A DNA stretch of 64,000 nucleotides from Octopus bimaculoides (lineage: Eukaryota), in NCBI RefSeq assembly GCF_001194135.2, contig NC_068983.1, forward strand, positions 137,250,945 through 137,314,944. Reading direction: 5' to 3'. The notes under the pieces were generated by a model, which worked only from the letters and a program-made list of their open reading frames with translations, did not search any database and was not told where the DNA came from. Shown here piece by piece: positions 35,584 through 60,941 of this stretch. Positions within the stretch are counted from its first letter, which is position 1, and every line of letters begins with the position of its first letter. Both the position numbers and the translations under genes were made by a program.

Positions 35584-35850
35584 ATGTCTCCGAACAAATC
35601 ACGCAAATACTGCTGTATATGCAGCCACTATAGAGGGAAGAATGTAGACGGCAAAGTTATTTCACTACATAGATACCCTGCAAACGTAGCTATTCGTCGT
35701 ATTTGGCTTCAGAGATCGAAACTTGTGAGGAAAGACTTTGTTTACACTGCAAATAGCCAAATGTGTTCCCAGCATTTCGTCACTTTTAATGGACCATCGA
35801 AAGATCACCCCTTGCCATCCATTTTTCCAAACAAAGTATTTAAAATATCA
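35584..35850 (+). CDS. THAP zinc-finger exon (first coding exon of the ISL2EU-like transposase), phase-0 donor
   Basis: MSPNKSRKYCCIC...LHRYP...RIW...MCSQHF...PLPSIF (C2CH with P/W/F and an AVPTIF-like box). 89 codons followed by TCA|GTAAGT. Confidence 0.85.
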
Positions 35851-36661
35851 GTAAGTGCATGATCATATACGCAGTTAGTAGATGAGTGNNNNNNNNNNNN
35901 NNNNNNNNNNNNNNNNNNNNNNNNNNNNNNNNNNNNNNNNNNNNNNNNNNNNNNNNNNNNNNNNNNNNNNNNNNNNNNNNNNNNNNNNNNNNNNNNNNNN
36001 NNNNNNNNNNNNNNNNNNNNNNNNNNNNNNNNNNNNNNNNNNNNNNNNNNNNNNNNNNNNNNNNNNNNNNNNNNNNNNNNNNNNNNNNNNNNNNNNNNNN
36101 NNNNNNNNNNNNNNNNNNNNNNNNNNNNNNNNNNNNNNNNNNNNNNNNNNNNNNNNNNNNNNNNNNNNNNNNNNNNNNNNNNNNNNNNNNNNNNNNNNNN
36201 NNNNNNNNNNNNNNNNNNNNNNNNNNNNNNNNNNNNNNNNNNNNNNNNNNNNNNNNNNNNNNNNNNNNNNNNNNNNNNNNNNNNNNNNNNNNNNNNNNNN
36301 NNNNNNNNNNNNNNNNNNNNNNNNNNNNNNNNNNNNNNNNNNNNNNNNNNNNNNNNNNNNNNNNNNNNNNNNNNNNNNNNNNNNNNNNNNNNNNNNNNNN
36401 NNNNNNNNNNNNNNNNNNNNNNNNNNNNNNNNNNNNNNNNNNNNNNNNNNNNNNNNNNNNNNNNNNNNNNNNNNNNNNNNNNNNNNNNNNNNNNNNNNNN
36501 NNNNNNNNNNNNNNNNNNNNNNNNNNNNNNNNNNNNNNNNNNNNNNNNNNNNNNNNNNNNNNNNNNNNNNNNNNNNNNNNNNNNNNNNNNNNNNNNNNNN
36601 NNNNNNNNNNNNNNNNNNNNNNNNNNNNNNNNNNNNNNNNNNNNNNNNNNNNNNNNNNNNN

Positions 36662-36710
<49 letters not shown>

Positions 36711-36881
36711 TTGTTTGATTAAATAATAAATTTACAGCATTGAATCTAATATTCCTCTAATTATTAGACTTTATAGTGTGACTGTCCCTACCTCTTCTAC
36801 ACCTCATCATGCTCATGGCCAAATCAGTGAATGGTTGCTGAAAGCTATGCCCACGTAAAGCCGTATTTAACTTATTTGCAG

Positions 36882-37710
36882 AATATACAAGTGAATGGAT
36901 GTCCAGAAGATATTGAGACCAAGGAAGTTGAAGATGTGAATGTTACAGAACAGCTTGTAAGTCCTACCATGTCTATGTTGAACTATTCTTTAATGTTTCA
37001 TGATTACTGTGGTCCAGTTAATCCTGAATCAGTCTCAGCATTTACACACAAGTCAGTGCAGACTGTACAGGAAATTGGTACCAAGGAAATAGGAATACAA
37101 TGTGATCCTGCCAATAAACCTATTTCTACAAATAGCAGTACTCAGACGTTGGAAAGTAAGATGGTGGATTGTGAAACGCAAGCAAAAATACCTGTGCTTA
37201 CATATGAAGATGTGCAAATGATAATCAGAAGCTTCTCTTTTACACGAGAATACCAAATTCTATGACTTTTGATTGTCTTTTTGATGAAATTAAAGATGAT
37301 GCAGCAAGTGAAACTGCCAGACATGGTGCATCTACAGAGCAAAGGAGACCCAGACAGTTTCGATTAATTGATGAATTTTTTCTTGTACTTATGAGATTGC
37401 GACTTGGGCTGCTATTAGAGGATTTAGCATATCGCTTTTGCATTAGCACAACTACATGTGGCATAATATTTAATAAGTGGATTGATTACTTAGATGTCCA
37501 GTTATCATTTCTGGTAATGTGGCCATCAAGAAAAGCAGTGAATGACCATATGCCACCATCATTCCGTGCAAAGTATCCAACTTGTCGAGTTATAGTTGAT
37601 TGTACAGAAATACAAACTGAGACTCCTTCTTCTCTGCAAAGCAAATCATTGATGTACAGTGATTATAAATCACATATGACATGGAAGGGCTTAATAGGTA
37701 TCAGTCCAGC
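36882..37710 (+). pseudogene. transposase exon 2, frameshifted at about 37215 and truncated before the 2nd and 3rd catalytic residues
   Basis: Acceptor cttatttgcag|AAT is phase 0, compatible with exon 1. FHDYC motif. A 1-nt frameshift separates YEDVQ from DNQKLLFYTRIPNSMTFDCLF. The frame is fused to CRE sequence after GISPA. Confidence 0.8.
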
Positions 37711-37711
37711 A

Positions 37712-38358
37712 AAGTTCTTGTCAACGTTGGCAGCTCGCCTCACCAGGGTGTCAAGTGATACCCGTAAGGACGCTTGGCTTTCCCAACATCCTTAGCCTCA
37801 CCATCGCCCGTAGTAATGCTGGCTGGCTTGCTTCAGTAGGTTTCGTTAAACCTTGTGGTGTGCGACGAGTTGCTGTAATAAAAACAAATTCCCCACTAAT
37901 AGTTTCAATGCTGTTTTAACAGAAAGATTTGGAAGAGTTAAATGAAAGTTCTCCTGTAATTTTCTTTCATGTAAATAAATATCTATGTTAATTTTAAAAT
38001 TTGCCAGTAAAATCTTATAAAATGACAATGTTCTAAAGCATGCACATGTTTATATGTTATATATGAAAATATAAATTCGATTTACATTAGATCAAAAAAA
38101 AAGAAGAAAATTCTAACTGGGCCCTGGTTGTAAGGTCATGCGCTGTTTATCTTGATATGAGATCACCATGTTGCGCACATATGGTTGTGATGCATGTGCA
38201 TGGTGTACCCTTATCAGGTGGGTAGTCATGATGGATATATTGGGCTTCGTATATTTGTATTCCAGTGTCAGTTTGATGGCATGCTTTACTTTCTCACTCA
38301 ATAATGATAGTACGAAAACGTTCATAATTCTGTAGAGTGGAAAGATAACAAAGCTATA
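37712..38358 (+). repeat. direct duplicate of 34833-35458 (CRE 3' end + poly(A) + family E 3' half)
   Basis: About 630 bp, high identity with scattered substitutions. Copy 1 has a 19-nt deletion between tca repeats. Confidence 0.95.
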
Positions 38359-39068: not shown

Positions 39069-39116
<48 letters not shown>

Positions 39117-40217: not shown

Positions 40218-40439
40218 ATCACTATTATTATTATTAGGCATGGAAGTACCAACAGCTGAACCTTCCCAAGATGCATGCAGAGAGATGAAACTGTCTATCA
40301 TGCAATCATTCAGTATACATGCATTAGAGACTTGTGGCACTGTGCTGAGCAGTTGCTGTCTCGTGTAAGATGAATCCAGCTGTTCATCAAGTGTATAGTG
40401 AAGATCAATGCACCACCTTCCTTTAGCAGAGATGGAAGG

Positions 40440-41284: not shown

Positions 41285-43946
41285 GCAGGGTGCTGGCAGA
41301 ATCATTACTGTACTGAACAAAATGCTTAATGGCATTTCATCCAGCTTTATGTTCTGATACCACTGATGTTGACTTTGCCTTTCATCCTTTCAGAGTCAAT
41401 AAATTAAGTACCAGTCAAGCATCAAGACCGACGTGATCAACTAATCCTCTCCTCTAACGTTTCAGCCCTTGTGCCTATAGTAGAAAGGATTATATTGTTA
41501 TCATTATTATTATTGAGTGAAAGAGCAACGTATGCCATCAAAGTGACACTGGGATACAAATACATGAAACCCAATATACCCATCATGACTACTTGTCTAA
41601 TAAGAGTACACTAGGCACATGCATCACAACCATTTGTGCATGATATGATTATTATTATTATTCAATAAATTAAGTACCAGTGAAACACTGGGATCGATTA
41701 AATAGACTAGTCCCCCTCACCCAAAATTTCAAGCCTTGTGCCTACAGTAGAAAGGGTTGTTGTTGTTGTTGTTGTTGCAGACATCACACAGTATCCAATA
41801 TTGTGATATTGTAGATTGAAGATATTGTGTGTACTGGGGATCTGTACTGTCTGTCAAGTCACAAGAACTTCAGACAGACAGTACTTTACGCAGTATGTTC
41901 TAAGTAAAGCTGATTTTTTGCAAAACACCAAGATTGTAGGGTATTTTTTAAGTGTCCAGACGTTTCTTCAGGTTGGGTGGTATTGAACCCAATGCTCTGA
42001 TGACAACAGGAACAACCTTTACATTTGACTCTTACAGCTGCCACATCTTGGTGATCTCAATTTTCAGGTCTCCATATTTGTTGACATTTTCTCTTTTTTT
42101 CATGATAATATGCTGATCTGGCATGAGTTGGCAGAATCATTAGCATACTGGGCAAAATGCTTAGCGTCATTTCATCCATCTTTATATTTTGAGTTCAAAT
42201 TCTGCCTAAGTGGATTTTACCTTCCATCCTGTCAGAGTTAATAAAATAAATAGCGTCTACCATTCTAATAATTTTATCAATCTACTGGTCTTAATAATAC
42301 TACCAACAACAACAATGATAATAATAATGGTTTCACATTTTGGCACAAAGTCAGCAAGTACTGCCTTCCTGAGCTAAAAATTGTGGTAGAGGCCTCAGTC
42401 TCAGGACCACTTATGTCCAGAAACTGAGGTTAGGGGTAAGCAAGGGCATGCTCCCCATAGAAAATCCAGCTCCAAAAAAGCCTCATGATAGCAAAGGAGA
42501 AAGGGCACCAGCCAGTCCAAAGGTTGGGGTGGGCTGCACTTGCCTACTTCGGTTGCTATGGCATTGAGGTAGATCCAGCCACCCCCATTAACAGGGACAA
42601 AACCTGGATTTAAAACACTGGATGATGATGATGGATGTCCAGACGTTTTTTGAGGTTGGGTGGCATTAAACCCAGTGTTCTGATGATAACAAGAACAACC
42701 TTTACATTTGACTTTCACAGCTGCCACATCTTGGTGATCTCAATTTTCAGGTCTCCATATTTGCAAAAAATCAGCTTTACTTGGAACATACTGCATACTG
42801 TGTAAAGTATTGTCTGTCTGAGGTCCTTGTGTCTCGACAGACAGTACTTGCCGACCTTGTACCAAAATGTGAAACCATTATTATTATTATCATTGTTGTT
42901 GTTGGTAGTGTTATTAAGGCCAATAGATTGATAAAATTAGTAGAATGGTAGACAAAATACTATTATATTTTGTTGCATGTATCCCTTTACATTGTTAGTC
43001 CAAAGAGGCTTTGGTAACAAAATTTTAAGAAAATTGATGGTGGTTCTGTATATTTGTACATATTATTATTTTTTATTTTTTTGTTACAGAGGCAATCAAT
43101 ACTTGACTCAAAATCTGGTCACTTAGATAATATAATTCATAGTATAAAGACTCTACTAATGTGCTGAAATATCTAAAAATCAAATGAAATATTTTTAAAA
43201 TAACTATTATGATTTATCAGTTAAAACAATTATGCAATTGCTTATTATTTTCAGATGGTGAGGAATTATTGCAGAAAAACACAACAGGGTTCATGGCACA
43301 AAGAAAATCTTCAAGGAGCTATTATGGCTGTCTTGAAAGGAGAGCTGGGTTACATGAAAGCTTCTAAACTATTTAGCATTCCAAAAACAACATTAATCCG
43401 TTATGTAAAGAAACATAAGAACTTGATGATGGTAAGTGTTAAAGTTTATTTATTTTAGCAATTACAAGGAAAAAATTCCGTTTTCTACCGAGAAGTGGCT
43501 TTGTTTTATTGACAAGTCAAATATTGTTGATACATTTGAGTCAGGTATCAGAAATGCTTAGCAACAAAATGTTTAAAGCACTTCTTCCAGCTTTACATTC
43601 TAACTTCAAATACTGCCAAAGTGAACTTTGCTTTTGTCCTTTCAGAGTTGATAAAATGAGTACCATATGAGCACTAGAGCCAATGTAATGACCTATCTTC
43701 CTCCCAAAGGATTATTGTCATTGAAGGTAATAGACTGACAGAATCACTGGAACATCAGATAGAATATTTATAACTGTATTTATTCCAGCTTTCTTCAGGT
43801 TGCATTCAAGTCCCAACAAGATCAACTTTACCTTTCGTGTTTTCAAGATTGGTAAAATAAATATGTTAACTACTGAGTTGGACTGGGTATAAGCTAAGCT
43901 CCCTTCTCCAATTCAAAATCACCCATATTGTGCTTAAATTAGAAAC

Positions 43947-44003
<57 letters not shown>

Positions 44004-45900
44004 CATCATCATTACTATTAAATCATGACCTCATGATTGTGTTGTACTCACAATCGCAAGATTATGGTTTCAATACCTAGACCAAATGGTGCATTGTGTT
44101 CTTGAGCAAAACACTTCATCTCATTGCTCTGTGATAACTTTGACACCTGACATATGGTACGCCATGCACCTCTTCAGGCAGTGTCAATTTAATGGAAGGT
44201 GTGAGCTAAGGTACAGCACATACATTTGCTCGTTATAAACAACCCATTTGTGCAGGTCATTTGGCAAAAGCTGAACATTCATACATCATATTCAACGGCA
44301 GAGTCTGTCATTATTACTATTACTATTATTGACCCTGGTAACAATCAAGTACTGGAGTCAACTTGTTCCCCCCACTCAAAAACTGCTAGCTCTGTGCCAA
44401 AATTTAAAACCATTATTATTATTATATTCAAATTCCACCGGGGTCAACTTTGCCTTTCATCCTCTTGGGGTCAATATAATATGTACCAGTTAAACTCTGG
44501 AGTTGATGTAATTAACTTAACCCTTCCCCATAATTGCTGGCCTTGTGCCAAAATTTGAAACCATTATTATTATTATTATAAGGCAGTGAGCTGGCAGAAT
44601 CGTTAGCACACCGGGCAAAATGTTTAGCAGCATTTCATCCATCTTTACACTCTCAATTCAAATTCCACCAAGGTTGACTTTGCTTTTCATCCTTTTGGGG
44701 TCAATAAATTAAGTACCAGTCAAGTACTGAGGTTAATGTAATCGACTAGTCTCCTCCTCCAAAATTCCAGGCCTTGTGCCTTTTGTAAAAAGGTTGATTA
44801 TTATTATTATTATTATTACTATCATGATAATTAAGTGTTAGATAGCTGGACAAAACAATTTTGTTCACCTCTACATTATGAGTTCAAATTCCACTGGGAT
44901 CAACTTTAACTTTCATCCATTCAGGGTTGATAAAATAAGTACCAGCTGAGCACTGGGGTCAATGTCATGGACTAAACCCTCCTCTTAAAATTGCTGGCCT
45001 TGTGCCAAAATTTAAAACAATCATTATTAGGAGCAAGAGATTTATAAAATAGTGGACAAAATACCTTACTATATTTTGTAATATCCCTTTAGATTCTTAG
45101 TTCAAATCACTTTGTGCTCATCTTTCATGCTTCCAGGGTAGATTGAATGAATACCAGTGTATCAACTGTTTCTTTAGAAAAAAATTAATGGCTTTGTGTC
45201 TATATTAGAAACAATTGATATCACTGAGGTGGAGAAGGAAGTACTGCTGCCTAGTAAATTTGTTAAAAGAGTAACAGAAATGACCTCAGTGAATAGGCCT
45301 ACTTTTAGCATGTGCCTGTAAGCTGGAAATGATAGATGTGATAGGAGGAGAACTTTACATTTCATCCTTCCAGGATAAAATAAAGTATATTCAAGTATAC
45401 TGGGATCAATTTAATTGACTAACCCCTTTCCATGAATTTCTGGTCTCCTGTCTGAGTTAGAAATGATTACTAAGAACAGTAAAATTGATAAACCATTGAA
45501 CAGAATGTTTTGTGATATTTAGTTACACTTTTCACATTCTGAGTTCAAACTCAGCTTGGGGCAACTTTATCTTTCCAGGACTGATACAATAAATACTAAT
45601 CAAGTATTAGGGTTGGTTTAATTGATGTCTATGTAACATATTATTATAGTGGAGGCGTCAAGCTGGTAGAATTGTTAGCACACTGGACGAAATGCTTGGT
45701 GGTATTTTACCCGTCGTTATGTTTTGAGTTCAAATTCTGCCAAGGTCAACTTTGCCTTTCATCCTTTTGGGGGTCAATGTAATTCCCCAAAATTTCAGAC
45801 CTTGTGCCTTTAATAGAAAGGATTATCATAGTAGAATTACAGTCCAAATCCAGCTGAAGTCACATTTGTTTTCCATCCTTCTGAGTTTGATAAAATATTT
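41285..45900 (+). mobile_element. cluster of about 10 co-oriented family-B SINE copies (200-220 bp, (ATT)n tails)
   Basis: Repeated aaggc.gtgagctggcagaat..ttagca...gagttcaaatt..gaggt..actttgcctttcatcct...aagtaccagt...ccttgtgcc...attattatt, for example at 41290, 42115, 43540, 44580, 44870 and 45655. Confidence 0.9.
43255..43431 (+). CDS. pipsqueak-type HTH exon (59 codons, ATG at exon start, phase-0 donor)
   Basis: ttattttcag|ATG...ATG|GTAAGT. Peptide MVRNYCRKTQQGSWHKENLQGAIMAVLKGELGYMKASKLFSIPKTTLIRYVKK is typical of the HTH_psq N-terminus of pogo-like transposases. Intact amid decayed SINEs. Confidence 0.85.
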
Positions 45901-46949
45901 TTTTTTGTAGTTTTAGCTCAGAGCTGTGGCCATGCTGGTTCTCTTACTCTTCTCATTCACTCCTAGAACCTCTGTCTCCCTCATTCCTACCCACCTTGTA
46001 CCTTCAAAGTCCACTCTGACACTATCTCCAATTTCCAGCTTCACATCATCCCCAACCGCTTTTCTAAAACATGAGTGATCATATAGCTACTCTTCAGCAA
46101 GAAACCTGTTCAGCTCCAGCCCTTTTCCCTCATATTTTATTCCTCTCTATTCTTTATTCTCCTAACAAAGTTCCTCCTTCTCACTCAAGGTTTGTAGTCT
46201 TGCAAGCTGCATGGTAACTTCACTAGTGCTCATTGAAAAAAAGCATCTAGTACACACAGTGAAGTGGTTTTATGAAGAGGCAGCTGTAGAAACCATGCTA
46301 AAGCTGACACTGGAGCATGATGCAGTCCTTGACTCATCAGATCCTGTCAAACTGTTCGGCCTATGCCAGCATGGAACATGGACATTAAAATGATGATGAC
46401 ATATTTGTGTGTGTGTGTGTGTTTCATTATCACCATCATCAACCTTTAATGCCTGTTTACCATGCTGGCAGGGGTTGGATGGTTTGACCAGAAAGCTGCA
46501 CCAGGTTCCAGTCTGATTTAGTTTGGTTTCTATGGTTGGATGCCCTTCCTAATGCCAACCACTTTACAGTGTGTGCTGAGTGCTTTTACATGGTACTGGC
46601 ACTGGAACAGGACTCTTGCAAGCTGGTCTTCTTCACCAAGAGATGCAGCCTTAACACTTCTGCTGTGGAGTACGGGATTTCTTCAGTATAGCAAGGTGCT
46701 AGGTCTTTTGTTATCTCATCTGAATGGTTCAGCATTCTGAGGTTGTTAATTCAAAGGCCAAGAGTTTTGTGCATTAGCACTTATCAAACTTATCATCACC
46801 AAACCTATGTATATATATATGTGAGGATCAGCTGAAAAGTTCATAAGATTCAGCACCATAAAGCAATGTTGTCAAGACCACTGACTTCTTTACATTGACT
46901 GTTCCAAAGCCTATGATAAAGCTTACCAAAAGCAGAGTTAGCCTTCCTG

Positions 46950-48578: not shown

Positions 48579-48579
48579 A

Positions 48580-50277
48580 TCTTAATATATAAAGCTGAAG
48601 TTGTGTGTCTGTGTGAAGCCTTTTTGAAAGTTTATAGAAATCCACATTTTCCACTTTTTCGTAAAAATTTTTACATCAATGGAATTTTATTGAACTTTCC
48701 AGTGCAGTAATTAGATTTTTTAAATTCCGTTTACTTTGTGTGATTTAAGGGAGATTTGGCTGTTGTTTCTAGCAACTTTTATATTTCTTCCCTTCTACCT
48801 GTACACACAATCATTGACTACAATATAACTCATGTTCATCAATGTTTGGTAAATATACCACGATTTTCAANNNNNNNNNNNNNNNNNNNNNNNNNNNNNN
48901 NNNNNNNNNNNNNNNNNNNNNNNNNNNNNNNNNNNNNNNNNNNNNNNNNNNNNNNNNNNNNNNNNNNNNNNNNNNNNNNNNNNNNNNNNNNNNNNNNNNN
49001 NNNNNNNNNNNNNNNNNNNNNNNNNNNNNNNNNNNNNNNNNNNNNNNNNNNNNNNNNNNNNNNNNNNNNNNNNNNNNNNNNNNNNNNNNNNNNNNNNNNN
49101 NNNNNNNNNNNNNNNNNNNNNNNNNNNNNNNNNNNNNNNNNNNNNNNNNNNNNNNNNNNNNNNNNNNNNNNNNNNNNNNNNNNNNNNNNNNNNNNNNNNN
49201 NNNNNNNNNNNNNNNNNNNNNNNNNNNNNNNNNNNNTTTGGTAAATATACCACGATTTTCATTAGGGTGTTAGTGTTAGGGTTTATGTATCACTCTCTCC
49301 CCCCCTCTTTTACTCTTACTCTCTAAATTATATGTTGAGCGCATAATTACTGCACTGGAAAGTTCACATCGAAAAAATTCCATTGATGTAAACATTTTTA
49401 AATTCCGTTTACTTTGTGTGATTTAAGGGAGATTTGGCTGTTGTTTCTAGCAACTTTTATATTTCTTCCCTTCTACCTGTACACACAATCATTGACTACA
49501 ATATAACTCATGTTCATCAATGTTTGGTAAATATACCACGATTTTCAATAGGGTGTTAGGGTTAGGGTTTAAGGTTAGGATTAGGGTTAGTGTTACGGTT
49601 TTAGGGTTAGGGTTAGGATTTTAAGGTTACGGTTAGGGTTTAGGGTTAGTGTTAGGTTTAGGGTTTTAGGGTTAGGGTTGGGTAATCGTGCGGGTGTTAA
49701 TCTGAAAAATTACAGAAATGTGAAAATTACCGACCCTGCCATCTATTATAACTTTGTTGTTCTATTTAATGTATACATAGATTATGCCTCCAAACAAGAG
49801 AGTTTGCTGGGGAAAGAAAGCAACCAGTTTAAAATGACAGCAACAGACTGCAGCAATTCACCACATTCCAGAAGCTACTTTGAACATAATGCAAAGTGGT
49901 GCATCAACATATTCTACCTAATCTGATAGAATTATGGCAAAACTGTGTAGCAACAGATCGCCAGCAATTGCTTCATCAGAAATTGCCATCCTACCTCCTG
50001 CTAAAAGAGATTACCCTGCTATATATAATCAGGGCAGCGCAAAAAGTTTGTTTTGCACAAGCATTTCTACAGCCAATTAGACGGATGAAATTTACGTACG
50101 CTTAATAATGTTACGCAAAACAGCCTTCAGACTTTCCCTATTAATTTTATCGTCTTTTGAATTATGAACATATTTACATCATAAGGGTTTTTTCTTTTTA
50201 GTTGATTTTCACCTAGCAAGACTTATCGTAGATGGTGTAATAAGTCACACCCGGACAAGGTCGGGTTATACTGCTAG
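48580..50277 (+). mobile_element. non-autonomous Helitron (about 1.7 kb)
   Basis: A|TCTTAATATATAAAG 5' end. 3' hairpin acccggacaaggtcgggt 7 nt before CTAG|T. No TSD. Contains an internal duplication (about 48640-48870 vs 49330-49550). Confidence 0.8.
49548..49685 (+). repeat. degenerate interstitial (TTAGGG)n tract inside the Helitron
   Basis: About 20 TTAGGG-like units with variants (ttaggat, ttagtg, ttacgg, tttaggg). Confidence 0.9.
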
Positions 50278-50478
50278 TATTTATATATATTAACGTAAAT
50301 CCTAAAGATGCATACACACACACATATATACATACATTCGTTAGAATTAGATATCGGATAAACCGGTCGAAATCTGAATTAAGCGAGAGACTGACAATGT
50401 TGATTTACACCGCCATTTCACTATTAATGTTTCTCCTTGCAATTTCCTTTCGCATTTCTGGGATTAGATATCTTTCAG

Positions 50479-50980
50479 CCTCGTGATATACACGATGGCT
50501 TCAAGGGAAAGTAAGAAGCCAAGGAAAAAGCATGCTACTCTATCTGTGATCCAGAAACTGGAACTTATAAAGAAGTTAGAGGCTGGTGCTTCGGTGAGGA
50601 GTATTTGTACTCAGTATGGTATCAAAAAACAAACAGTTTCAGGCATACGCAAGGCTAAGGACAAACTTACTACATTTTCTTTGAAATATAATGTTGCTGC
50701 AAATTCTAAACTATCTGTTGGTGCAAGGAAGCGTATGAGAGTTGCAAAAGATTCAAATCTTGAGGAAGCTGTGACGAAGTGGTTTATCCATCAACGATCT
50801 TGTGGTAATAACGTCCGTGGTGTGGAAATCCAAAGTGCTGCTGTCAAGTTAGCTAGGGACATGGGCGTCGACAATTTTGTAGCTAGTGATGGGTGGTTAT
50901 GGCGATTTAGAAATCGCCATGGAATGTGTAAAAAAATTACCACTGGAGAAGCAGGTAGCCCATCAACCGGGGAACTTACG
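50479..50980 (+). CDS. CENP-B/Tigger (pogo) double-HTH exon. ATG at 50495, 162 codons, phase-0 donor
   Basis: tatctttcag| acceptor. RKKHATLSVIQKLELIKKLEAG..IKKQTVSGIRK (CENP-B_N), then LEEAVTKWFIHQRSCG..VRGVEIQSAA..FVASDGWLWRFRNRHGM (HTH_Tnp_Tc5). Ends ACG|GTATGA. No DDE domain follows. Confidence 0.85.
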
Positions 50981-51204
50981 GTATGAACTTTTTATTTAAT
51001 TTTATGTATTAACGTTAAATAATTTTAAAAGCAGAATTTATACTTGCATAGTTATATATTCTTACAGTATGTACTCAAATTTTGCATATACTTCCAATAT
51101 CATGTACGTATACAATATTAAATTCTACCATCGGTTAATTCGGACATTTGACTAAAACGGACATCCCCCCCCCCCCATTAGTTTGCTTCAATGAGGAGGA
51201 ACTG
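50981..51204 (+). mobile_element. 3' end of an internally deleted Tigger/pogo element
   Basis: ggttaattcggac...aaacggaca-(c)n-cattag...ACTG followed by TA resembles a Tigger right end. The catalytic region is absent. Confidence 0.55.
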
Positions 51205-51300
51205 TATATACAAGACACCCTTCAACTTTTAATATATGTTTATTTTTTTCATTCATTCAAAGCTGTTTATTCATTTTGTTGCTACTCAGCATTTCTCATT

Positions 51301-51400
51301 TGCATGCGTTCGTTCAGATGAGACATTTAGGGTTCGGTTTAGAAGTATCAGTGTTCGTTTCTTAAAGGGGTATGTTGTTAAGACTGAATGAACGCATGCA
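51301..51400. repeat. small foldback: 17-bp arms around a ttagggtt-containing core
   Basis: tgcatgcgttcgttcag / ctgaatgaacgcatgca (16 of 17 positions match). Confidence 0.8.
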
Positions 51401-51489
51401 CGCGGAAACTCGGAGTAGCCTTAGAGTGAATCATCAGTTTGGAATGTCAAAATATAGGTTAATACATACACGTACACGAATTTGATGCT

Positions 51490-51545
51490 ATTTCTCTGTC
51501 GCCATATTTCAGTCGATGAAATAAATTTCCGGCGCCATTTTTTGG
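51490..51545 (+). promoter_or_regulatory. candidate promoter with two YY1-type motifs upstream of the FLYWCH exon
   Basis: CGCCATATT at 51500-51508 and CGCCATTTT at 51533-51541 in a CpG-retaining segment. A similar CCGCCATTT lies at 50410, before the CENP-B exon. Confidence 0.5.
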
Positions 51546-51757
51546 ATTAAGTCGTCATAATTTTACACTCTGTAACTGTATTCACGACTTGCACAGAAAG
51601 AACGGAATTTTTTTCAAATAGGAGACGATTGATTTCAGTATAATGTATTCATTTTATTTACAAATTTAAAATTTACTCTTAATTTCAAACTGTCATTTTA
51701 AAGATTCGGTTACTTCGTTTGGTTACAAGCGGCCTAGGAAATAAACAGGGTTTCCAG

Positions 51758-52163
51758 AATGGAGCAAAACCCATATAACGGTATATGGATTCCTGTAACA
51801 GACGGTCACGACAAAGTGATGTACGAAGGATATATTTTCAATTATGAAAAAATGAGTAAAACAGATGAAGACACACGCTTTTACTCATGTTACAGAAAAA
51901 AATCGTTGCGTTGTAAAGCAAGGTTGCACATCTGTAACAACACAATAACAAAATTGCACAAGACTCACAACCACACTGAAGATTCGGCGAACATTGAGAA
52001 AAGTAGTAAGTTTAGAGCGGAAGGAGAGATGATACGAGCGATGGAATCACATGCAACAAGATTATCTGTCGCGAATAACAGTCACATTTCAACAATATCT
52101 GTCCCAGAAATACTGGCTATCACAAATTCTCCTGGATGTATAAGACAAAGAAACACGAACAAA
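51758..52163 (+). CDS. FLYWCH zinc-finger exon (MULE-type). ATG at 51759, 135 codons, phase-0 donor
   Basis: KVMYEGYIFNYEK...RFYSCYRKKSLRCKARLHICNNTITKLHKTHNH, followed by a MULE-like linker. Ends AAA|GTAAGT. Confidence 0.85.
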
Positions 52164-53429
52164 GTAAGTATATTCACGTGTGTATGTGAAAGCGTTTGTT
52201 TACATGTGTTTAGAGAATGAATCTCGTCAACTGAATAACTCGATTTAAATCTGGCGGCCCATAATTCATCAATTACTTTTTTTCTCGACACCGATTTCGT
52301 GGACATAAATTCTGTTTCAAAAGATTTTGAAAAATATTACGAAGAAATTATTGTTCGCGCATCTCCGTATTGTAACTTGTGACAGTTATTTTTGTCAAGT
52401 ATTGATAGACTGCTCTCGATTAAAAGTACACGTAAAAACGATCTTACTGCTGACTGTCTGCTAATAGCGGGAACGGTGTAGGATACGGAAGTTGCTTTCA
52501 AATATTCTAATTAGTAGTTGACAATAAGCAGTGAATAGTTCTTTTCATGCATTTTAACCTAGAACACTTGCGCTATCGACATTCATTATTCTATTACATT
52601 AATTGTGCGATATAGGTACCTTAAAAAGAAGAAAGATGTGAAAAATAAAAAGAAACTGATAACATGCTACTAGTCACTGGGAATAAATCGAACTGTTATG
52701 AAAACTGCGCTTATTTCGATATTAACACCTTAAGGGCCGGCGAAAAAAGTAACTGAAAGTAGTTGTTCAGTCCCAAGTCGTCTTTGATTGAATAGGTCTG
52801 TAACCAATATTTTTCCACTCGCCACCACCGTATCTTTTTATGAGTATGTAAGCTAAGCTATGCAATCTAATACGTTTTCTTTGTTAAGACTGTAGGATGA
52901 TTTAAGAGAGATTTGGTTGTTATTCCTAGCAGTTCGGGCAACTGCAGAGAGCCCCTCGCGCTAACAAAACTCAGGACAATCGAACGAGTACAGGATTAAA
53001 TCAAGAGCTCCTCAAGTTTGACATGTTTGGTATGATAGTAAACAAAGACCCGACGAGAAAGTTTTTATGGTTACTAGACTAGCTAGGAGGCGCAACCACA
53101 TCCCCCTCATTAAACCCCAATTCTACTATTTTAAACGAAGGACAGATAACATGGTTCTAGATACATTAAATGTGAATAAAATACGGGATGGTCGTAGCTG
53201 GAACGTTTTTGATCATAGATCTGTTCGAATAACAACAAAGACGTGGAAAAAGTTTAGACAGTTTTACTTCTCAAAGATTCGCTGCATGAATTGACTATTT
53301 ATCCATGTGCGTAATAATATAAATAATAAAAAAATGTATTTAATCTCCCCCTCTCTCTTTCATACACACACACAAATAAATTCTACATATTTTGTCTTCT
53401 ATTGGCGGTGCTTTTAAGTTAGACATAGC

Positions 53430-53734
53430 CTGAGCCTAAACTCGCCCAAACCGAAGACACTGGGTGTTTTGGGTCTCATACAACACACATCCTCATCCAG
53501 GCAACCCAACCGAGGTTGATCAAGCCCAGCCCTATATCCAAGCGACCTCCTACTGACCCCACCGATCAGTGACCAGTTGTTCTTGATAGCTCTTCTGTTC
53601 ATTCCTGTAATTATTAAATGCATAGAATTCCATAGGTATCCTTGACTGCCAACCACCACTGGCAAACACCCCAATATTGCGGCAGTCCTCCACTGTGTAC
53701 TTGGTTCTCATCAGTTCTTGCGCCTTCCCCATTC
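53430..53734 (-). mobile_element. HERO/NeSL-like RLE non-LTR retrotransposon 3' fragment
   Basis: Minus: KAQELMRTKY..DCRNIG..LPVVVGSQGY..., then the 3' UTR gcttgatcaacctcggttgggttgcctggatgagg...agacccaaaacacccagtg, resembling HERO 3' UTRs (from memory). Confidence 0.65.
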
Positions 53735-53742
53735 GTCTATAC

Positions 53743-54167
53743 CAGGGGTCAGATGACTGAGAGAATGACGAGAGCGAGCCGCATAACCATTTTCTTTAAT
53801 ACAATACATTGAATACACAACAAATAAAGACAACCAACATGTTTATTTACCAAAAAGTTATCAAAGAAGGTGACGTTAGCAATAAGATAGTTTTATCACA
53901 CCCAGTGCGCACATATCCGAATCTCACAAACTAAGCAGCAAAAAAGGTTAATGAGATTTGTGAAAATGGTGTTTAGCTTTTAAGATATCAATATTTGCTT
54001 TGGAATTGTTGCATCCAACCAAGAGAATTGCTTTCAAATGTTCATCAGTCAACCTCGTTCGATGTGCTGACTTCACATACTTCATTTTTGAAAATGTTTG
54101 CTCACAGGCATAAGTTGTTCCAAACACGGATGAACTGACCTCGCAGGCCGTAGTTTGGTGACCCCTG
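53743..54167 (-). mobile_element. internally deleted hAT (SPIN/Buster-like) element with 8-bp TSD
   Basis: Ends CAGGGGTC / GACCCCTG. TSD GTCTATAC at 53735-53742 and 54168-54175. Minus peptide SVFGTTYACEQTFSKMKYVKSAHRTRLTDEHL. Confidence 0.9.
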
Positions 54168-56229
54168 GTCTATACTGTTGTCTTTACTTCTGTTAAAGAA
54201 TTTGGACAAATTCCGTAGAATAGTCTCAGATTTTTTGGCATTTATTTGATTGATTAAGCGTGAATTTTTAAAACTTGATCTCTACTTGTTCAATATGCTT
54301 TTTTAATAAAAAGAGGGCTTTTCCGATATATCTACAGAAGTGTAGCCCCCCCCCCCACTTTGTTTCCTCATAACTTCCTGAAAAATGGAAATTTCTAATG
54401 AAATTTTCAACAAATACTTTTCAGGTGCTCTAGATTCCGATTATATCGGAATTTGTTGTGAAAATGTTTTTCAGAGAAGATGAGAGGAGTTTTGATAAGT
54501 CAATAATCTTGATTTTGTTTCCTCATAACTTTCAGAAAAATAGGTATATTTTTAGCAAAATTGTCTACAAATACCTATCAGATGGTGTAGGTTATGATTG
54601 TCTGGGAATTTAATTGATGACTGCATACAGATACATTCTGATTCACATCAAGTAATTTTTTCAAGATTTTAAGTTTCATTTCATAGATATGTGGTGTGTG
54701 TATGTATTGCGTGCCCATAAAATTTTTCTTTTGTTCTTTTCTTTTTTTTTTTTGGTCTCAAACTGCCGATACAATCATAATCTATGCCACCTGACAGGTA
54801 CTCGTAGAAAATTTCACAAAAGAATAGGGAATGGGTCAAAATGAAGTGTTTTTTAGACAAAATATATTTTTTTACAAATGTTCACTACCTCACAAAAGCT
54901 ATATCAGTAAAGCAAATGGTCTTCCCTAAATGCACTATAGCATAATCTGATCACTATTTCAGATAATTATTGCCATTCTCTTTGAGCATATATATAAAAG
55001 ACTAATTTGGCTGGGGCAAAATGAGTAGGCCAAGATGATAAATTTGCCACTTCAGTTCTCAAAAAAAAAAAAAACAGACTCATACACATCACTATCCATC
55101 CCTAGACATCAGAAATGCGAAAATTAAATATCTAGGTCAAATGAAAGAAGATCAGGGGGAAATGGCACAAGATACGAAATTAACAAAACTTGACTAAATA
55201 TTAAAAAAAAAAACTCTTCAGAAAATATTATCTATATCTTCTTCACGATCTGCTGGAGTGTCTTTTACCCCGTTTTAGACATCATATTTTGAAACTTGAA
55301 AAAAACCAAACTGGACATTAGTGTGAGGAAAAATTGATTTGGAATCCAACAGAGAAAAGAATATTGATTGTTAAACACCAAAAATTACAGTTAGGTCAAA
55401 GTTGAGGAAATATTTCTTGTAAAAAGAGGACTTGCCACCTGATTATGTTTCAGTCTCTCTCAACTTCAACAACTATGCTGACCAATTTTTACTCCTAAAG
55501 ATGATGCAATATTTGCAATGTAATGATTTCTAATAGGTTAGGAGAAAATAACAAGAAATCAGAAGTTACTCATTTTACCCTGGTGCTAATTTTTTCTAAC
55601 AGTTATGAAGAAACAAAGTCAATGGGAGGAGCACACATGTAGGTGTGTGGGTCTTCCAATTTTTTCTCTTTTTTTTTTTAGTATGACACATTCAAGATAT
55701 CATCATCATTTAACGTCCATTGTACATGCTGGCATGGGTTGGATGGTCTGACTGGGCTGGCATGCTGAAAGGCTGCACCAGGCTCCAGTCTGATTTGGCA
55801 TGGATTTCTATGGCTGAATGCCCTTCCTAATGCCAACCACTCCATGAGTGTAATGGGTGCTTTTACGTACCACCAGCACAGATGTATGTCATCATCATCA
55901 TCGTTTAACATCTGCTTTCCATGCTAGCATGGGTTGGACGATTTGACTGAAGACCGGTAAACCAGGAGGCGACACCAGGCTCCAGTCTGATTTGGCAAAG
56001 TTTCTACAGCTGGATGCCCTTCCTAACACCAACCACTCCGAGAGTGTAGTGGGTGTTTTTATGTGCCACCGGCACGAAGGCCAGTCAGGAGGTACTGGCA
56101 ACGGCCACGCTCGAAATGGTGTATTTTACGTGCCACCTGCACAGAAGCCAGTCCAGCGGTACTGGCAACGAACTCGTGCCAGATATATATATATTTATGT
56201 ATTTATACATATATATCTAAAACGAACTC

Positions 56230-56522
56230 CATCAGTTACGATGATGAGGGTTCCAGTTGATCCAATCAACAGAATAGCCTGCTCATGAAACTGATGTGCA
56301 AGTGGCTGAGCATGCCACAAACATATGTACCCTTGATGTAGTTTTCAGAGAATGTCACAAGGCTGGCCCTTTGAAATAGGGTACTACTCATTTTTGCCAG
56401 CTGAGTGGACTGCAGCAATGTGAAATAGTGTCATGCTCAAGGACACAATCTGTTGCTCGGATTTGAACTCACAACCTTACAATCATGAGCTTAATACCCT
56501 AACCACTAAGCCACATGCCTTC
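56230..56522 (-). mobile_element. tRNA-CORE SINE sharing its 3' module with family C
   Basis: Reverse complement: tggcttagtggttaggg..gagttcaaatcc..gtgtccttgagca..gcagtccactcagctg, then the same 3' tail as 5945-6090. Confidence 0.8.
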
Positions 56523-56554
56523 ACTGTATGTATGTATATATGCATACATACGTA

Positions 56555-57811
56555 GAGGGTGCAGTGAATAAATTGCCGTCTAAATTATGCAAAAATGAAA
56601 ATAACACATCTCATTTTAACAGATATATTTACCAAAACTGCATATCTTGAAATACTAAACAGTAAATTTATTCAATAAAATCGCCATTGGCTTCAACCAC
56701 GGCCTCCAGACGACTTTAGAATTTCCTGCAACTCTTCTAGACAGTCTCTTTGTTTAAGTTGGTGAATGCTGCCATATTCATCTTTAATGTTACAAGGAGT
56801 TTTGTTGGTCTCTCACTCAACTGCATCCCACACATAATAATCAAAGGGGTTGCAGTCTGGGGAGTTAGGTGGCCAGATGTTAGGGGTAATGTGGTCACAG
56901 AAATTATCTGATGGTCATTACTGGGTTCTCCTGCTTGTGTGGCATGGTGCAGAGTCCTGTTGCCAGATATAGGGTCTTCTAGCAGCCACCCCCTTGGCCA
57001 AGGGCAGCACTACCTCCTCCAGGCACTTGATGTAGGCTTCCATGTTGAGTCTGAGGCCGTTTGGGAAGATGAATGGAGGCATAACATCACCAACACTAGT
57101 GATCACTTCAAACACCATGATGTTGACTGGATGTTTGATTTTTATCACTCTTGGTACATGTTTTGGGGACACAGCAAGCCAATGGTTGTTCAGTGTGTGC
57201 ACTATCTGATCCTAGCAGAAATTTTTCTCGTCTGAGAAAAATGAAAGCATGTTCAGTTGGAGGGGATGCTTGAGTTTGTTCAAAAGCTTCTTAGTGCAAT
57301 CGTTCCTTTTGTTCTTGATGGCTTGGGGAAAAAATTGGCCCTTTCTCATCTTGTATGAGGAATATCAACTGTCTTTATGCACTACATGCCTGATAAGAAA
57401 CTCAGACACTCCTGTTTCCCTGCCGATAAACTTGATTGAGATGCAGGAATTGTTGTCAATCTTGGCTTGGATCTCACCAACAAATTTAGTTCTTTTCTTA
57501 TCAGAATGATCCGAGTGAGTTTTCTGAGCTGCCATACCTTCGTAATCACCATTGGGCTCATCCAACTCTTTCCAAATCCTCTTCACTGTTGTCAGAGTGA
57601 CACCCAAACACTCTCAAATGTTCATAGAGCTTCTCGCATGAATGCTAAGCAGTACAGTATGTAGTTTCCAAATTTCTGGCAGAGTGAACTGCATCATGGT
57701 GCTGTTTTTCTCACAGACGGTGCCCAGCTCACCCTACAAAACAGTGTAGTTAAGAAACCAATGCATATGTGCGAAATTAAAAATATAAGATGGCAACAAT
57801 TTACCCATTAC

Positions 57812-57817
<6 letters not shown>
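56555..57817 (-). mobile_element. maT-type Tc1/mariner (DD37D), full length but decayed
   Basis: FSDEK...QQDSAPCH-...-WPPNSPDCNPFDYYVW, with 37 residues counted between the 2nd and 3rd D. Imperfect TIRs flanked by TA. In-frame stops present. Confidence 0.9.
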
Positions 57818-57850
<33 letters not shown>

Positions 57851-58676
57851 CAAATAAAAGGGTAAAGGATTAACAATTTATTAATAAATTAATAATTAAT
57901 AATTTTTACCAAGCACTTTAGCTGTTATTTCTGAACTTCGGTATGTGGTGAAGCAACTGTTGCTGATCCCTTAATTATGTTTATATATGTGTGTATATAT
58001 GTATATATGTATATATATATATATATATATATAGGTGTGATAAGAGGCTTCCTTTACAATCACTTGGTTCCAGGTTCAGCCTTATGAGTGGATTGTAGAA
58101 GTGAGAGTGCAGTTACATAATTTGGAAAGACATCTATGTGCACTGAGTTGGGAACAAATCAATGAAGGCACAAATATTAGGATGCATGTGTAGCTGGATG
58201 TGGGCTCTGCATGCACCAATGTAAGAACACTGATTCACCATCATCATCGTTGTTGTCGTTTAACATCCGCTTTCCATGCTGGCATGGTTGAACGGTTTGA
58301 CTGAGAACTGGCAAGCTCCAATCTGGTTTGGCAAGGTTTCTACTGCTGGATGCCCTTCCTAACGCCAACCACTCCGAGAGTGTAGTGGGTGCTTTTACGT
58401 GCCACCGGCATGGGAGCCAGTCAGGCGGCACTGGCATCGCCCATGCTTGAATGGTGCTTTTATGTGCCAGTCAGGCTGCACTGGCATCAGCCACACTCAA
58501 ATGGTAGCAAAGATTAAGTAATTAGTCTAAAACATGTAGCAAAAACAATGTTTTCTTCAGACAACACTTAAGCAGGAGACAGAAACACATGACCATGCAT
58601 ACACAAACTCATACGCATAGACACTGAAGCATGCACATATGCACACACATGCAACAAGATCTCAAGCAGACAGATG

Positions 58677-58769
58677 CGGCGAAGGTAAAGAATACGTACA
58701 CCCGGTGGTTAGGTTTAGGGTTTTTGTTACGCCGAAAACCGGTTGTGTACGTATTCTTTACCTCCGCCG
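58677..58769. repeat. mini foldback element with telomere-like core
   Basis: cggcgaaggtaaagaatacgtacac..ccggt / accggttgtgtacgtattctttacctccgccg around ggttaggtttagggttt. Confidence 0.9.
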
Positions 58770-59179
58770 ACAAATGCTGCCTCCGTAACAAACTAAGTCA
58801 AAAGTTAATGAAAAAGTTTCAAGTAGCAACGAAGAAACTTTGACAAACGAAAACAAAACAAATGACTTACTGTTTAGCCAAATTAAACAAACAATCAATT
58901 AGTTGGATATTTAACCAACTGACGAATTATAAAGAAGTGGAATTAAACCAGTGTGTGTGTGTTAATAATATTGGCATAAGGACTCTCCCTATATACAGCC
59001 CTTGTATTCTTTCGTTTTATAACGAAATGAAAGTGGAAAATTATCGTAAGCAATCGTCCTTAAAAAATTCAGATTTGTTTTAAACGGGAAAGAGGTTTCA
59101 GGATTTTTTAAGAATTCTTTTTTTAAAAAAATGTTGAAAACAGAATCCGAAGAAATTTTTGATTAAAAAAATGGTGGGG

Positions 59180-59620
59180 AGGGAAAGTGTGCTTTGCCTG
59201 TTCAAAACGCCCGCCTGGTCATTGCCGATTAGTGTCAGTATTTCCACTTTCATTTTCTGATTATAAAACGAAATATCACAGCTATTTGAAATCCCTCCGA
59301 GGTCGAACTTCGCCTTCCTCGTCTCTCAAAATGTATGTGACCTTGTCGCTGTATGAGAAAAAAATATCATTATACTGTTGCCATGACGTCAGTTTAATTC
59401 GTCACAGAACCACAAGAAGGAGGTAGTTCACCATAGTGATATCATAAGTTAGACACTCGAAAATTGTTCATCGGGAATCCCGAAGCCTCGGAAGCGTAAG
59501 TAAAGGGAGATAACTGTATTGTTGCTACGGAATGATTGTTATCACATGGTAACACTCATCAGGTGGCAGCACAGGTTACCAAAACAAAAAGAAGAAAATG
59601 GCAGGCGATTTGTAAAATGT
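59180..59620 (+). promoter_or_regulatory. CpG-retaining candidate promoter / non-coding first exon for the THAP cassette
   Basis: GTTGCCATGACGTCA (X-box half plus CRE, 59377-59391), gttatcacatggtaac (X-box-like), AAAATGGC (59595) and a candidate donor GAAGC|GTAAGT at 59495/59496. Confidence 0.5.
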
Positions 59621-59998
59621 TATCGTTAAACTGAATGAAATTATGAAAAATGTAATAAATGAAGATGATTTCTTACTCAATAAAAACAAGGTAGATCATT
59701 TATTTTTGTCATAGTTTATCCTTAAAAAGCTATTGAAAATTAGTAAAGAAGTTTCTGCTGTTGTCACATTTCTATCAGTTTTCATTAGATGAAAAACTGC
59801 TATTTGTCAGTGACATGTGTTTGTTAGGAAAAGTATGAGGGAGATAGAGAATGAGTAACCTGTTATGCATCGTTACACGTAATGTAGGTTGACTTGAAAC
59901 GAAATGAATTGGTTAGCAACGCCTTTTTATTTTTTATATTTACTTTCACACTAATAGAAAACGGACTACATACACAAAATACTGTTCCTTCGTATTTT

Positions 59999-60088
<90 letters not shown>

Positions 60089-60413
60089 ACTCTTAGGCGC
60101 GCAATCTCATGGTCCCCGCTTTTCTTCTTATACATCCTCATATTCTCTCACACCAACACAATTTCCATCAGACGCCTACACAGACAAATATTATCTCTCA
60201 CTACCTCTCTCATTTATTCACATACATACGTCAATGTTAAATCTGGATGGTATCGCTAGAAAATATCCATGCTGATAGAAAAGTGAAAATGTTCTACGAG
60301 AATTTGATTTTTTTTATTTTCCGGAGAGTAAAATAGCTAATAAAAGTGAACACCCAGTGAATAAATAATAAATGACACAGGCTGGAACTTTGCCTTCTTT
60401 TCTGTTTATGTAG

Positions 60414-60941
60414 GTGGCAATTTTCACTGAAATATTTTTGAAAAAAGATAGTTTTGGATCTATCGTGAAGATAAGCAGATCGATCGAAATAATGCCCCAA
60501 CATTGCGTGGTTAGATTTTGTGATACCATTCAGTCTTCGAGTGCAGGATCCGGTACCAGTTTACATCGCTTTCCGAAGGATCCCGTTTTAAGGTCCAAAT
60601 GGATCAATTTCGTTCAGACTGGGCGTAAAAACTGGGCACCATGTGTTTCATCTGCCATATGTTCTCTTCATTTCACCAGCGATGATTCTCTAGGGGTTTT
60701 AATGAAGAAATTCGGATGCCGCACACGCGTGTTCTTGAAGCCAGGAGCGATACCCACAATACAGTGCCCTAAAATGACATTGCAAACTTTTCAAAATTCA
60801 CCCACCACACAATATGTTTTGAGCACAGAAAAGCCTACAGAGCAATGGCAGGATTTAGTAAGTCGTAAAGCGAAAAACGATAATATAGTCCTGCCCGGCA
60901 GAAATCCATTAGATCCAAAATTATTTGAAGGAAATTCTCTG
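60414..60941 (+). CDS. THAP zinc-finger exon. ATG at 60492, 150 codons, phase-0 donor
   Basis: ccttcttttctgtttatgtag| acceptor. MPQHCVVRFC...LHRFPKDPVLRSKWINFV...ICSLHF...LKPGAIPTI (complete C2CH THAP). Ends CTG|GTAAGT. No transposase or TIR nearby. Confidence 0.9.

Follow-up and report, generated by a model that had tools for sequence, protein, structure and literature searches.

In Drosophila, the lola and mod(mdg4) genes join a constant 5' part that encodes a BTB domain to variable 3' terminal exons that encode DNA-binding domains, with FLYWCH among the domains swapped in mod(mdg4). At the protocadherin and UGT1A loci the variable exons are first exons, which are tandem duplicates and are spliced to shared constant exons. 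In host-transposase fusions, the cases of Cosby et al. reportedly involve one transposase per host gene. Here we analyse 64,000 nucleotides (nt) of the octopus Octopus bimaculoides (contig NC_068983.1, positions 137,250,945 to 137,314,944 of the forward strand), a stretch that we call the window, and find that it very probably represents the 5' half of the BTB gene LOC106877732. By the gene models discussed below, this half would hold a series of exon cassettes, each head being transposon-derived and spliced to a common BTB part.

The comparison with lola and mod(mdg4) is close in that LOC106877732 is one BTB gene, whose isoforms have BTB in common but vary in the DNA-binding domain, FLYWCH is found here too, and BTB pairing could give combinatorial complexes. 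However, the polarity is reversed, since variable exons that carry ATGs of their own occupy the 5' side and the BTB domain follows on the 3' side, and there are four unrelated transposase-derived folds instead of one duplicated type. No trans-splicing was seen, though none was sought. As at the protocadherin and UGT1A loci, a row of alternative 5' exons with their own ATG, and probably their own promoter, would by the gene models share constant exons. The cassettes differ from those exons in being independent captures of unrelated transposon domains and in that some are used in series (THAP, a 27-codon exon and psq). The locus is thus outside the strict definitions of both families. As in host-transposase fusions (bioRxiv 10.1101/2020.05.07.082677), host effector exons receive a transposase DNA-binding exon that brings its own splice donor, and the catalytic domain is omitted. 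Unlike those fusions, one gene here has at least five cassettes in 30 kb and more outside the window (XP_014782223).

The link to LOC106877732 comes from Table 1 of Mukherjee and Moroz 2023 (PMC10027918), which prints XP_014782194, XP_014782195.1, XP_014782201 and XP_014782223, all as LOC106877732 on scaffold KQ422521. The window is located on the minus strand of that O. bimaculoides scaffold, roughly 471955-535954 reversed; the coordinates printed for KQ422521 fit the window linearly, and the printed proteins are 100% identical to window exons. As printed, the four isoforms are built as follows.

XP_014782194 ('BTB THAP PSQ'): THAP exon 35584-35850, then NIQVNGCPEDIETKEVEDVNVTEQL at 36876-36956, then psq exon 43255-43431, then LKTQNQINEEYDVGD...
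XP_014782201 ('HTH-PSQ BTB'): MSNDEDLVAN at 31455-31484, then the psq exon, then the LKTQNQ... constant part
XP_014782195.1 ('CENPB BTB'): MASRESK...GELT at 50495-50980, then the LKTQNQ... constant part
XP_014782223: another psq exon (MVQSYVRKTDNGKW...), which has no counterpart in the window, then the constant part from HFVGGNGPTRDHP...

Matched to the window by tblastn, the variable parts of XP_014782194, XP_014782201 and XP_014782195.1 are 100% identical to 35584-35850, 43255-43431 and 50495-50980. These three isoforms share one constant sequence (LKTQNQINEEY...) with a BTB domain, into which the constant part continues (...LCDAGIGNGSSTVMVHKVVLSAVCPKLL...). In the RefSeq models the acceptor before LKTQNQINEEY is common to three routes, namely 31455 with psq, THAP(35584) with psq, and CENP-B (cassettes are identified where necessary by their start positions). 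The fusions place the cassettes in frame with the BTB-containing part, and the DDE part of the transposase is spliced out.

A sequence-only reading of the window had proposed one host gene that joins alternative transposase-derived 5' cassettes to a shared effector, and the three LOC106877732 isoforms, which are computed models, agree with it. The same reading placed the constant exons downstream, beyond the window, and tblastn indeed finds no match there for the LKTQNQINEEY... part. It also counted on the weak donor ACG/GTATGA at 50980 (here and below, a slash marks the exon boundary), and as printed XP_014782195.1 joins at this donor to LKTQNQ....

The exons of the window that bear on this reading, all on the plus strand, are listed here.

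31356-31484 (+): most upstream exon seen, with a 5' untranslated region (UTR) of 99 nt and coding sequence 31455-31484 (MSNDEDLVAN); donor AAT/GTGAGT, phase 0
35548-35850 (+): THAP cassette, the first exon of a transposon, with coding sequence 35584-35850, 89 codons; donor TCA/GTAAGT, phase 0; first exon of XP_014782194
36876-36956 (+): 27-codon cassette NIQVNGCPEDIETKEVEDVNVTEQL; acceptor TTTGCAG/AAT, donor CTT/GTAAGT, phase 0-0
43255-43431 (+): psq helix-turn-helix cassette, 59 codons; acceptor TTATTTTCAG/ATG, donor ATG/GTAAGT, phase 0-0, internal
50495-50980 (+): CENP-B_N plus HTH_Tnp_Tc5 cassette, 162 codons; donor ACG/GTATGA, phase 0; first coding exon of XP_014782195.1
51759-52163 (+): FLYWCH cassette, 135 codons; donor AAA/GTAAGT, phase 0
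60492-60941 (+): second THAP cassette, 150 codons; donor CTG/GTAAGT, phase 0

The five plus-strand frames named by the sequence-only reading, with ATGs at 35584, 43255, 50495, 51759 and 60492, are open and have lengths that are multiples of 3, and their donors at 35850, 43431, 50980, 52163 and 60941 are in phase 0 as it described. A stop codon lies 2 to 19 codons past each of the five. All seven donors or cassettes in the list are in phase 0, and the ATG-initiated exons with phase-0 donors are those at 31455, 35584, 50495, 51759 and 60492. Pfam confirms the proposed DNA-binding folds: THAP(35584) with an E-value of 3.4e-7, HTH_psq with 5e-10, CENP-B_N with 1.6e-7 together with HTH_Tnp_Tc5 with 2.7e-13, FLYWCH with 3.4e-12 and THAP(60492) with 4.4e-17.

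GTAAGT occurs 25 times on the plus strand of the window, and for four of five Pfam-positive open reading frames (ORFs) to end at an in-frame GTAAGT is far beyond chance. To gauge chance, we scanned the whole window for ATG-initiated ORFs of at least 55 codons with an in-frame GT[AG]AGT end. The plus strand returned the four GTAAGT cassettes and one artefact (4612), and the minus strand returned one ORF. The artefact, ORF 4612-4812 with its GTAAGT end, was rejected as a cassette because it is microsatellite junk.

The order of the exons was only partly foreseen. The sequence-only reading took psq for a first exon, and this did not hold: in XP_014782194 and XP_014782201, as printed, psq is an internal phase 0-0 cassette. 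The related claim that the exons are unable to chain is wrong in part only, failing for psq, which follows either the 10-codon exon or THAP(35584) plus the 27-codon exon. Cassette use is therefore not one per transcript, as XP_014782194 strings together THAP, the 27-codon exon and psq. The psq acceptor ends in TTTTCAG/ATG, and its flanks are nearly invariant.

The cDNA entries, which we matched by blast, place 5' ends at 31356 and 35548, the latter inside the transposon. The exon at 31356-31484 is the first exon of the psq-BTB isoform XP_014782201, with a 100% match to the cDNA of the Psq2 row. That cDNA joins exon 1 (...GTTGCCAAT, ending at 31484) directly to AATATACAAGT, the 27-codon exon, which the protein printed in the same row lacks. 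This mismatch implies at least one further isoform, consisting of exon 1, the 27-codon exon and psq. The cDNA of XP_014782194 matches 35548-35850 and then 36882-36942 at 100%; the first six bases of its second block, 36876-36881, are left unaligned by blast. Over 36876-36956, tblastn overruns the donor by one codon, giving 89% over 28 residues. The span of accessions from 782194 to 782223 suggests up to about 30 isoforms. In addition, the matrices of PMC10027918 contain the names Ob_Thap2 to Ob_Thap13, Ob_Flywch and Ob_Flywch2, in the same non-numeric style as the LOC106877732 isoforms, which may point to further isoforms of the gene.

Six comparison sequences (L001 to L006) were available. 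L006 is O. vulgaris OX597816.1, which is colinear with window 26111-59983 at ~90-94% identity and has a non-exon substitution divergence of 5.6% from the window. L002 and L003 are Logan contigs of one more distant octopus, ~82% identical and spanning window 50800-61989. L005 is O. bimaculoides CM046603.1 137532192-137560788. By tblastn, the constant part of LOC106877732 is absent from the window, L005 and L006. When the THAP-BTB paralogue XP_014782226 and the constant sequence were searched by tblastn against the window and L001 to L006, only the paralogues in L005 were matched, and an exact look-up with the CENP-B ORF, made to reach the constant exons, gave no match.

The sequence-only reading also pointed to dN/dS, the ratio of non-synonymous to synonymous substitution, and to synteny. 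FLYWCH, the THAP(60492) domain and psq, the last by its low divergence, are constrained; CENP-B is marginal, and THAP(35584) has no orthologue to compare. Against the more distant octopus, FLYWCH has a dN/dS of 0.146 (15.5 synonymous and 10.5 non-synonymous changes; p=1.4e-6), and against O. vulgaris it has 9 differences over 405 nt where 5.6% would be expected (p=7e-4). This exon is under purifying selection. For psq, substitutions relative to O. vulgaris are 1.7%, against a non-exon background of 5.6% (p=0.009); both psq and FLYWCH change at a rate 2.5-3 times below that background. The THAP(60492) domain shows 0 non-synonymous and 9 synonymous changes relative to the more distant octopus (p=1e-6) and its tail has an omega of 0.82, a pattern that points to purifying selection on the domain and near-neutral change in the tail. 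As for synteny, window 26111-59983 is colinear in O. vulgaris, and the THAP(35584) element is missing there.

Both O. bimaculoides and O. vulgaris have an undamaged CENP-B exon, with 3.9% divergence (p=0.044) and an omega of 0.42 that is not significant. In the more distant octopus it carries a 26-bp deletion that removes the WLWRFRNRH helix, as well as a premature stop, and so seems to represent a cassette lost in that lineage. Upstream of the exon is an in-frame acceptor, TAG/ATA at 50467/50468, which is used by the O. vulgaris model CAI9720180.1. This 241-amino-acid (aa) model comprises exon 1 (orthologous to 31356-31484, at L006:10001), psq and the CENP-B exon, and stops at the TGA that corresponds to 50984-50986. 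Its range runs from ATG to stop, without UTRs. The O. vulgaris gene models were built from Iso-Seq and RNA-seq data together with protein alignments and ab initio predictions (PMC10700109). CAI9720180.1 may be a further isoform or a mis-joined model.

For FLYWCH, the coding range of the O. vulgaris BTB gene begins exactly at the orthologous ATG (L006:25111), which indirectly supports a link of this cassette to the constant part, and the longest product of this gene is 868 aa. No BTB exon is found in O. vulgaris within 9.2 kb downstream of that ATG, and the gene range runs beyond. When FLYWCH was searched against protein representatives, the matches were the orthologous ORF and otherwise FLYWCH proteins no closer than 43% identity; none was a BTB fusion. 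The cassette is preceded by a conserved block:

51340-51610 (+): conserved non-coding block upstream of FLYWCH, candidate promoter; at least 99% identical to O. vulgaris

The core of this block, 51520-51579, is 96% identical to the more distant octopus, against a background of ~80-90%. The first ~130 nt past the FLYWCH donor (52164-52300) are as conserved as the exon itself (96% with the more distant octopus, at least 99% with O. vulgaris), and the read-through ORF stops at the same place in all three species, at 153 aa. This conserved start of the intron could be a splicing control element or give a retained-intron, FLYWCH-only product.

THAP(60492) is, we think, somewhat more probably than otherwise another cassette of LOC106877732, because it lies between FLYWCH and the constant exons, on the same strand and with the same build as the annotated cassettes. 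Its ATG is kept in four species and the frame upstream of it is broken in the more distant octopus by an 8-bp deletion; therefore, THAP(60492) is a first coding exon. A phase-0 GTAAG donor ends the ORF in all four species, with 150, 150, 176 and 194 codons. That the donor is kept despite this change in tail length suggests that splicing to a phase-0 acceptor has been conserved. Copies of the exon are few, with three clusters in the protein collection. It too has a conserved block in front:

60143-60440 (+): conserved non-coding block upstream of THAP(60492), candidate promoter or 5' UTR; 90-96% identical to L003

A coding junction from FLYWCH to THAP(60492) through the acceptor TAG/GTG at 60414 would be in frame in the window; we rejected it because the 8-bp deletion in the more distant octopus breaks the frame. 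We found no partner exons for THAP(60492) within 3 kb in the window or 10 kb in L001, and tblastx between species gave no match downstream of it. A second phase-0 donor, TTA/GTAAGT, follows codon 122 (60857/60858) and is kept in the more distant octopus; its use would shorten the linker.

THAP(35584) differs from the other cassettes in that much of its transposon is still attached. The features concerned are the following.

35459-37708 (+): ISL2EU/PIF-Harbinger-like transposon copy with THAP, HTH_Tnp_4 and DDE_Tnp_4, in that order
34820-35458 (no strand assigned): host segment copy 1, ~638 bp, a direct repeat beside the transposon
37709-38358 (no strand assigned): host segment copy 2, a direct repeat beside the transposon

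The copy is colinear with a full-length 507-aa mollusc protein that has THAP, HTH_Tnp_4 and DDE_Tnp_4, with aa 1-89 and 213-381 at 72% and aa 119-220 at 29% identity. Besides THAP, Pfam recognizes HTH_Tnp_4 and positions 1-45 of the 158 of DDE_Tnp_4. Compared with a second copy in L005, which is 94-97% identical, the copy is shifted in frame by 1 bp near 37215. It ends at about residue 381 of ~507, and its 3' end is missing, which leaves a terminal inverted repeat nothing to pair with. The 27-codon cassette is the start of the transposon's second exon, and its donor lies within the transposase ORF. The orthologous site in O. vulgaris is without the transposon, which marks THAP(35584) as a species-level addition; the element is young and decaying and not an old module. 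As given in the source, the RefSeq mRNA of XP_014782194 begins at 35548, inside the element.

The two host-segment copies are direct repeats with a period of ~2900 and 96-99% identity, and the segment is single in O. vulgaris, where L006 14405-15042 aligns to both. At 638 bp, this flanking duplication greatly exceeds the length of a target-site duplication. It could be real, or the assembler could have joined haplotypes with and without the insertion; the latter would make the transposase truncation at 37708 artefactual.

The element also connects the locus to its paralogues. L005 contains at least three tandem BTB paralogues, with products of 577, 711 and 547 aa, and the constant part of LOC106877732 is ~50-77% identical to their BTB exons. 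The 711-aa paralogue, the neighbouring gene LOC106877737 (XP_014782226), has gained THAP exons from the same transposon family as THAP(35584): the 94-97% identical copy stands in front of it and is annotated there as a THAP-BTB fusion, the mRNA start lies within ~10 nt of the element's 5' end, and Pfam confirms the BTB domain in this protein. The 547-aa paralogue begins with a homologue of the MPPKLSALS... exon, seemingly the ancestral first exon. Mukherjee and Moroz also list LOC106877745 as HTH-CENPB-BTB, and further octopus THAP-BTB and CENPB-BTB genes. A short stretch of the constant part of LOC106877732 (...CYSFLHFVGGNGPTRDHPDPLPVRP) resembles the C-terminal end of the THAP(35584) exon (CSQHFVTFNGPSKDHPLPSIFP), with 65% over 17 residues and E=0.015. 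The constant region may begin with a fossil of an older THAP capture.

Several observations weigh against reading the window as the 5' half of a single BTB gene. An important caveat is that all splice links are computed gene models (NCBI Gnomon and CNAG EVM/PASA), taken from the paper supplement or from gene ranges. There is no spliced, transcript-derived protein for any cassette among the protein-search matches, nor any gene model containing THAP(60492); these searches also missed the 100%-identical RefSeq isoforms and the O. vulgaris 868-aa BTB protein, so that empty results there do not amount to absence. The O. vulgaris annotation divides the locus otherwise: a 241-aa gene terminates at the TGA contained in GTATGA, and the BTB gene stands apart. 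For the 868-aa product of that BTB gene, Pfam records BTB only, without FLYWCH, and the FLYWCH start may belong to a shorter isoform or be a very short first exon. Finally, constraint on the CENP-B exon is marginal by the values given above, and THAP(35584) is too young for a selection test, so its use may be transcriptional noise.

These points raise the question of whether the window contains independent genes: a 241-aa Tigger-derived gene, a FLYWCH-BTB gene and a THAP(60492) gene nested in the first intron of the FLYWCH-BTB gene. We first favoured a version of this from the O. vulgaris annotation, with several independent units (the young transposon, a three-exon Tigger-derived gene, a FLYWCH-BTB gene and a nested THAP gene), and it was overturned by the RefSeq isoforms as printed. 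CAI9720180.1 chains exon 1, psq and the CENP-B exon through TAG/ATA and stops at the TGA, and this chain can be read without interruption in the window as well; the protein-search matches included no THAP(60492) model, and in a distant species the THAP(60492) orthologue is without FLYWCH in the 10 kb upstream and without BTB in the 10 kb downstream. However, RefSeq isoforms of one gene splice psq (43431) and CENP-B (50980) to the same BTB part, and the 241-aa model has no UTRs, suggesting little transcript support. The readings are also compatible, as psq-to-CENP-B could be one more isoform. Independent genes are distinctly unlikely on this evidence.

Alternatively, the isoforms could be non-functional chimeric transcription, in which transposon relics fire their own promoters and are accidentally spliced into the BTB gene. 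THAP(35584) fits such a description, being young, species-specific and decaying, with a RefSeq mRNA that starts inside the element. The CENP-B exon, lost in one lineage and weakly constrained, would fit as well, and assembled spliced products were not found in the protein collection. Noise does not account for the strong purifying selection on FLYWCH and the THAP(60492) domain or the lowered divergence of psq and FLYWCH, nor for the psq and 172-codon CENP-B frames that are intact in two species. It is also at odds with the phase-0 donor of THAP(60492), kept in four species despite the change in tail length, and with the repetition of the architecture of DNA-binding domain plus BTB in paralogues. 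As an explanation of the whole array we judge it very improbable.

That the ORFs are alternative 3' terminal exons reading through their donors after shared upstream 5' exons, the mod(mdg4)/lola-type arrangement that the sequence-only reading had itself raised, is scarcely credible: stops do follow each donor after 2 to 19 codons, the psq acceptor is perfect, a TAG before the CENP-B and THAP(60492) frames is a possible phase-0 acceptor, and the O. vulgaris model stops at the TGA past the CENP-B exon, but the BTB domain follows the cassettes in all printed isoforms and is joined at exactly these donors in RefSeq, tblastn finds no BTB exon anywhere in the window, the frame upstream of the THAP(60492) ATG is not kept (8-bp deletion), and neither is the TAG before FLYWCH in L002.

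Taking LOC106877732 as a cassette array with a common BTB part, the following model can be drawn. Transcripts would start at different cassettes and be spliced to one phase-0 acceptor before the constant region, past the 3' end of the window, and some would include the internal cassettes 36876-36956 and psq. The isoform products would have a common BTB oligomerisation/effector domain and differing DNA-binding heads, and through BTB pairing and partner recruitment they could act combinatorially. The array would grow when a sense-oriented DNA transposon lands in the 5' region and its own ATG, DNA-binding exon and first-intron donor become spliced to the host acceptor. New heads could arise by insertion in this orientation because, in the transposase genes concerned, the DNA-binding exon is already followed immediately by an intron; mollusc transposase models share this THAP exon boundary. 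Heads would also be lost through decay. THAP(35584) would then be a recent arrival with its decaying transposase still attached, and it resembles the first step of transposase capture. The isoforms would differ in the DNA targets that they bind, which may be the terminal repeats of the transposon families that donated the heads.

A bolder version, tentative and in our view unlikely, is that LOC106877732 is a landing pad that captures the DNA-binding exon of each invading DNA transposon, with ~30 isoforms and more THAP, FLYWCH and psq cassettes, and that BTB is brought to the terminal repeats of the donor families. If true, the gene would be a self-updating system for transposon surveillance or rewiring, with a logic like that of KRAB zinc-finger clusters, working via alternative first exons.

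On the cassette-array reading, the locus would be a cephalopod counterpart of lola and mod(mdg4), in reversed order and built from jumping-gene parts, where one gene gains new DNA-binding specificities by transposon exonisation. The stages would stand side by side, with THAP(35584) as a fresh capture, FLYWCH, THAP(60492) and psq as settled ones, and CENP-B lost in another lineage. How transcription-factor isoforms are born and lost by transposase capture could thus be tested directly at one locus.

The proteins themselves are already known: RefSeq has included the isoforms ever since O. bimaculoides was first annotated, and they are the ones given in Table 1 of Mukherjee and Moroz 2023 as 'CENPB BTB', 'BTB THAP PSQ' and 'HTH-PSQ BTB'. 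In PMC10027918 they are counted as separate transposon-derived transcription factors and BTB is treated as a transposon component; the paper does not present them as isoforms from one variable-first-exon array. In our literature search, neither the name of the locus nor a description of the array turned up in any paper. Octopus counts of 'transposon-derived transcription factors' would need rereading, because several are isoforms of LOC106877732.

Two assembly gaps fall within introns of the array.

35889-36661 (no strand assigned): assembly gap within the intron that separates the THAP exon from exon 2 of the transposon; crossed by no reading frame
48871-49236 (no strand assigned): assembly gap within the intron that separates psq from the CENP-B exon; no exon touched

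Both flanks of the first gap are used in one transcript model in the same orientation, by the XP_014782194 cDNA blocks described above, and the paralogous transposon copy in L005 has a gap of 743 Ns at the same place. On either side of the second gap lies one copy of an exact 154-nt duplicate (48717-48870 = 49395-49548), accompanied by a 25-nt repeat, and the region is probably an unresolved local repeat or assembly artefact. At megablast level, window 48591-50278 has no O. vulgaris counterpart.

Elsewhere, the introns contain a fragment of reverse transcriptase from a long interspersed element (LINE; RVT_1), a mariner/Tc1-like relic (...QQDSAPCHTS..., no Pfam hit) and dense clusters of ~230-bp elements resembling short interspersed elements (SINE-like). 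These intron repeats are located at 47014-47944 (-), 56918-57607 (-), 43600-46000 and 61800-63700, and several are absent from O. vulgaris.

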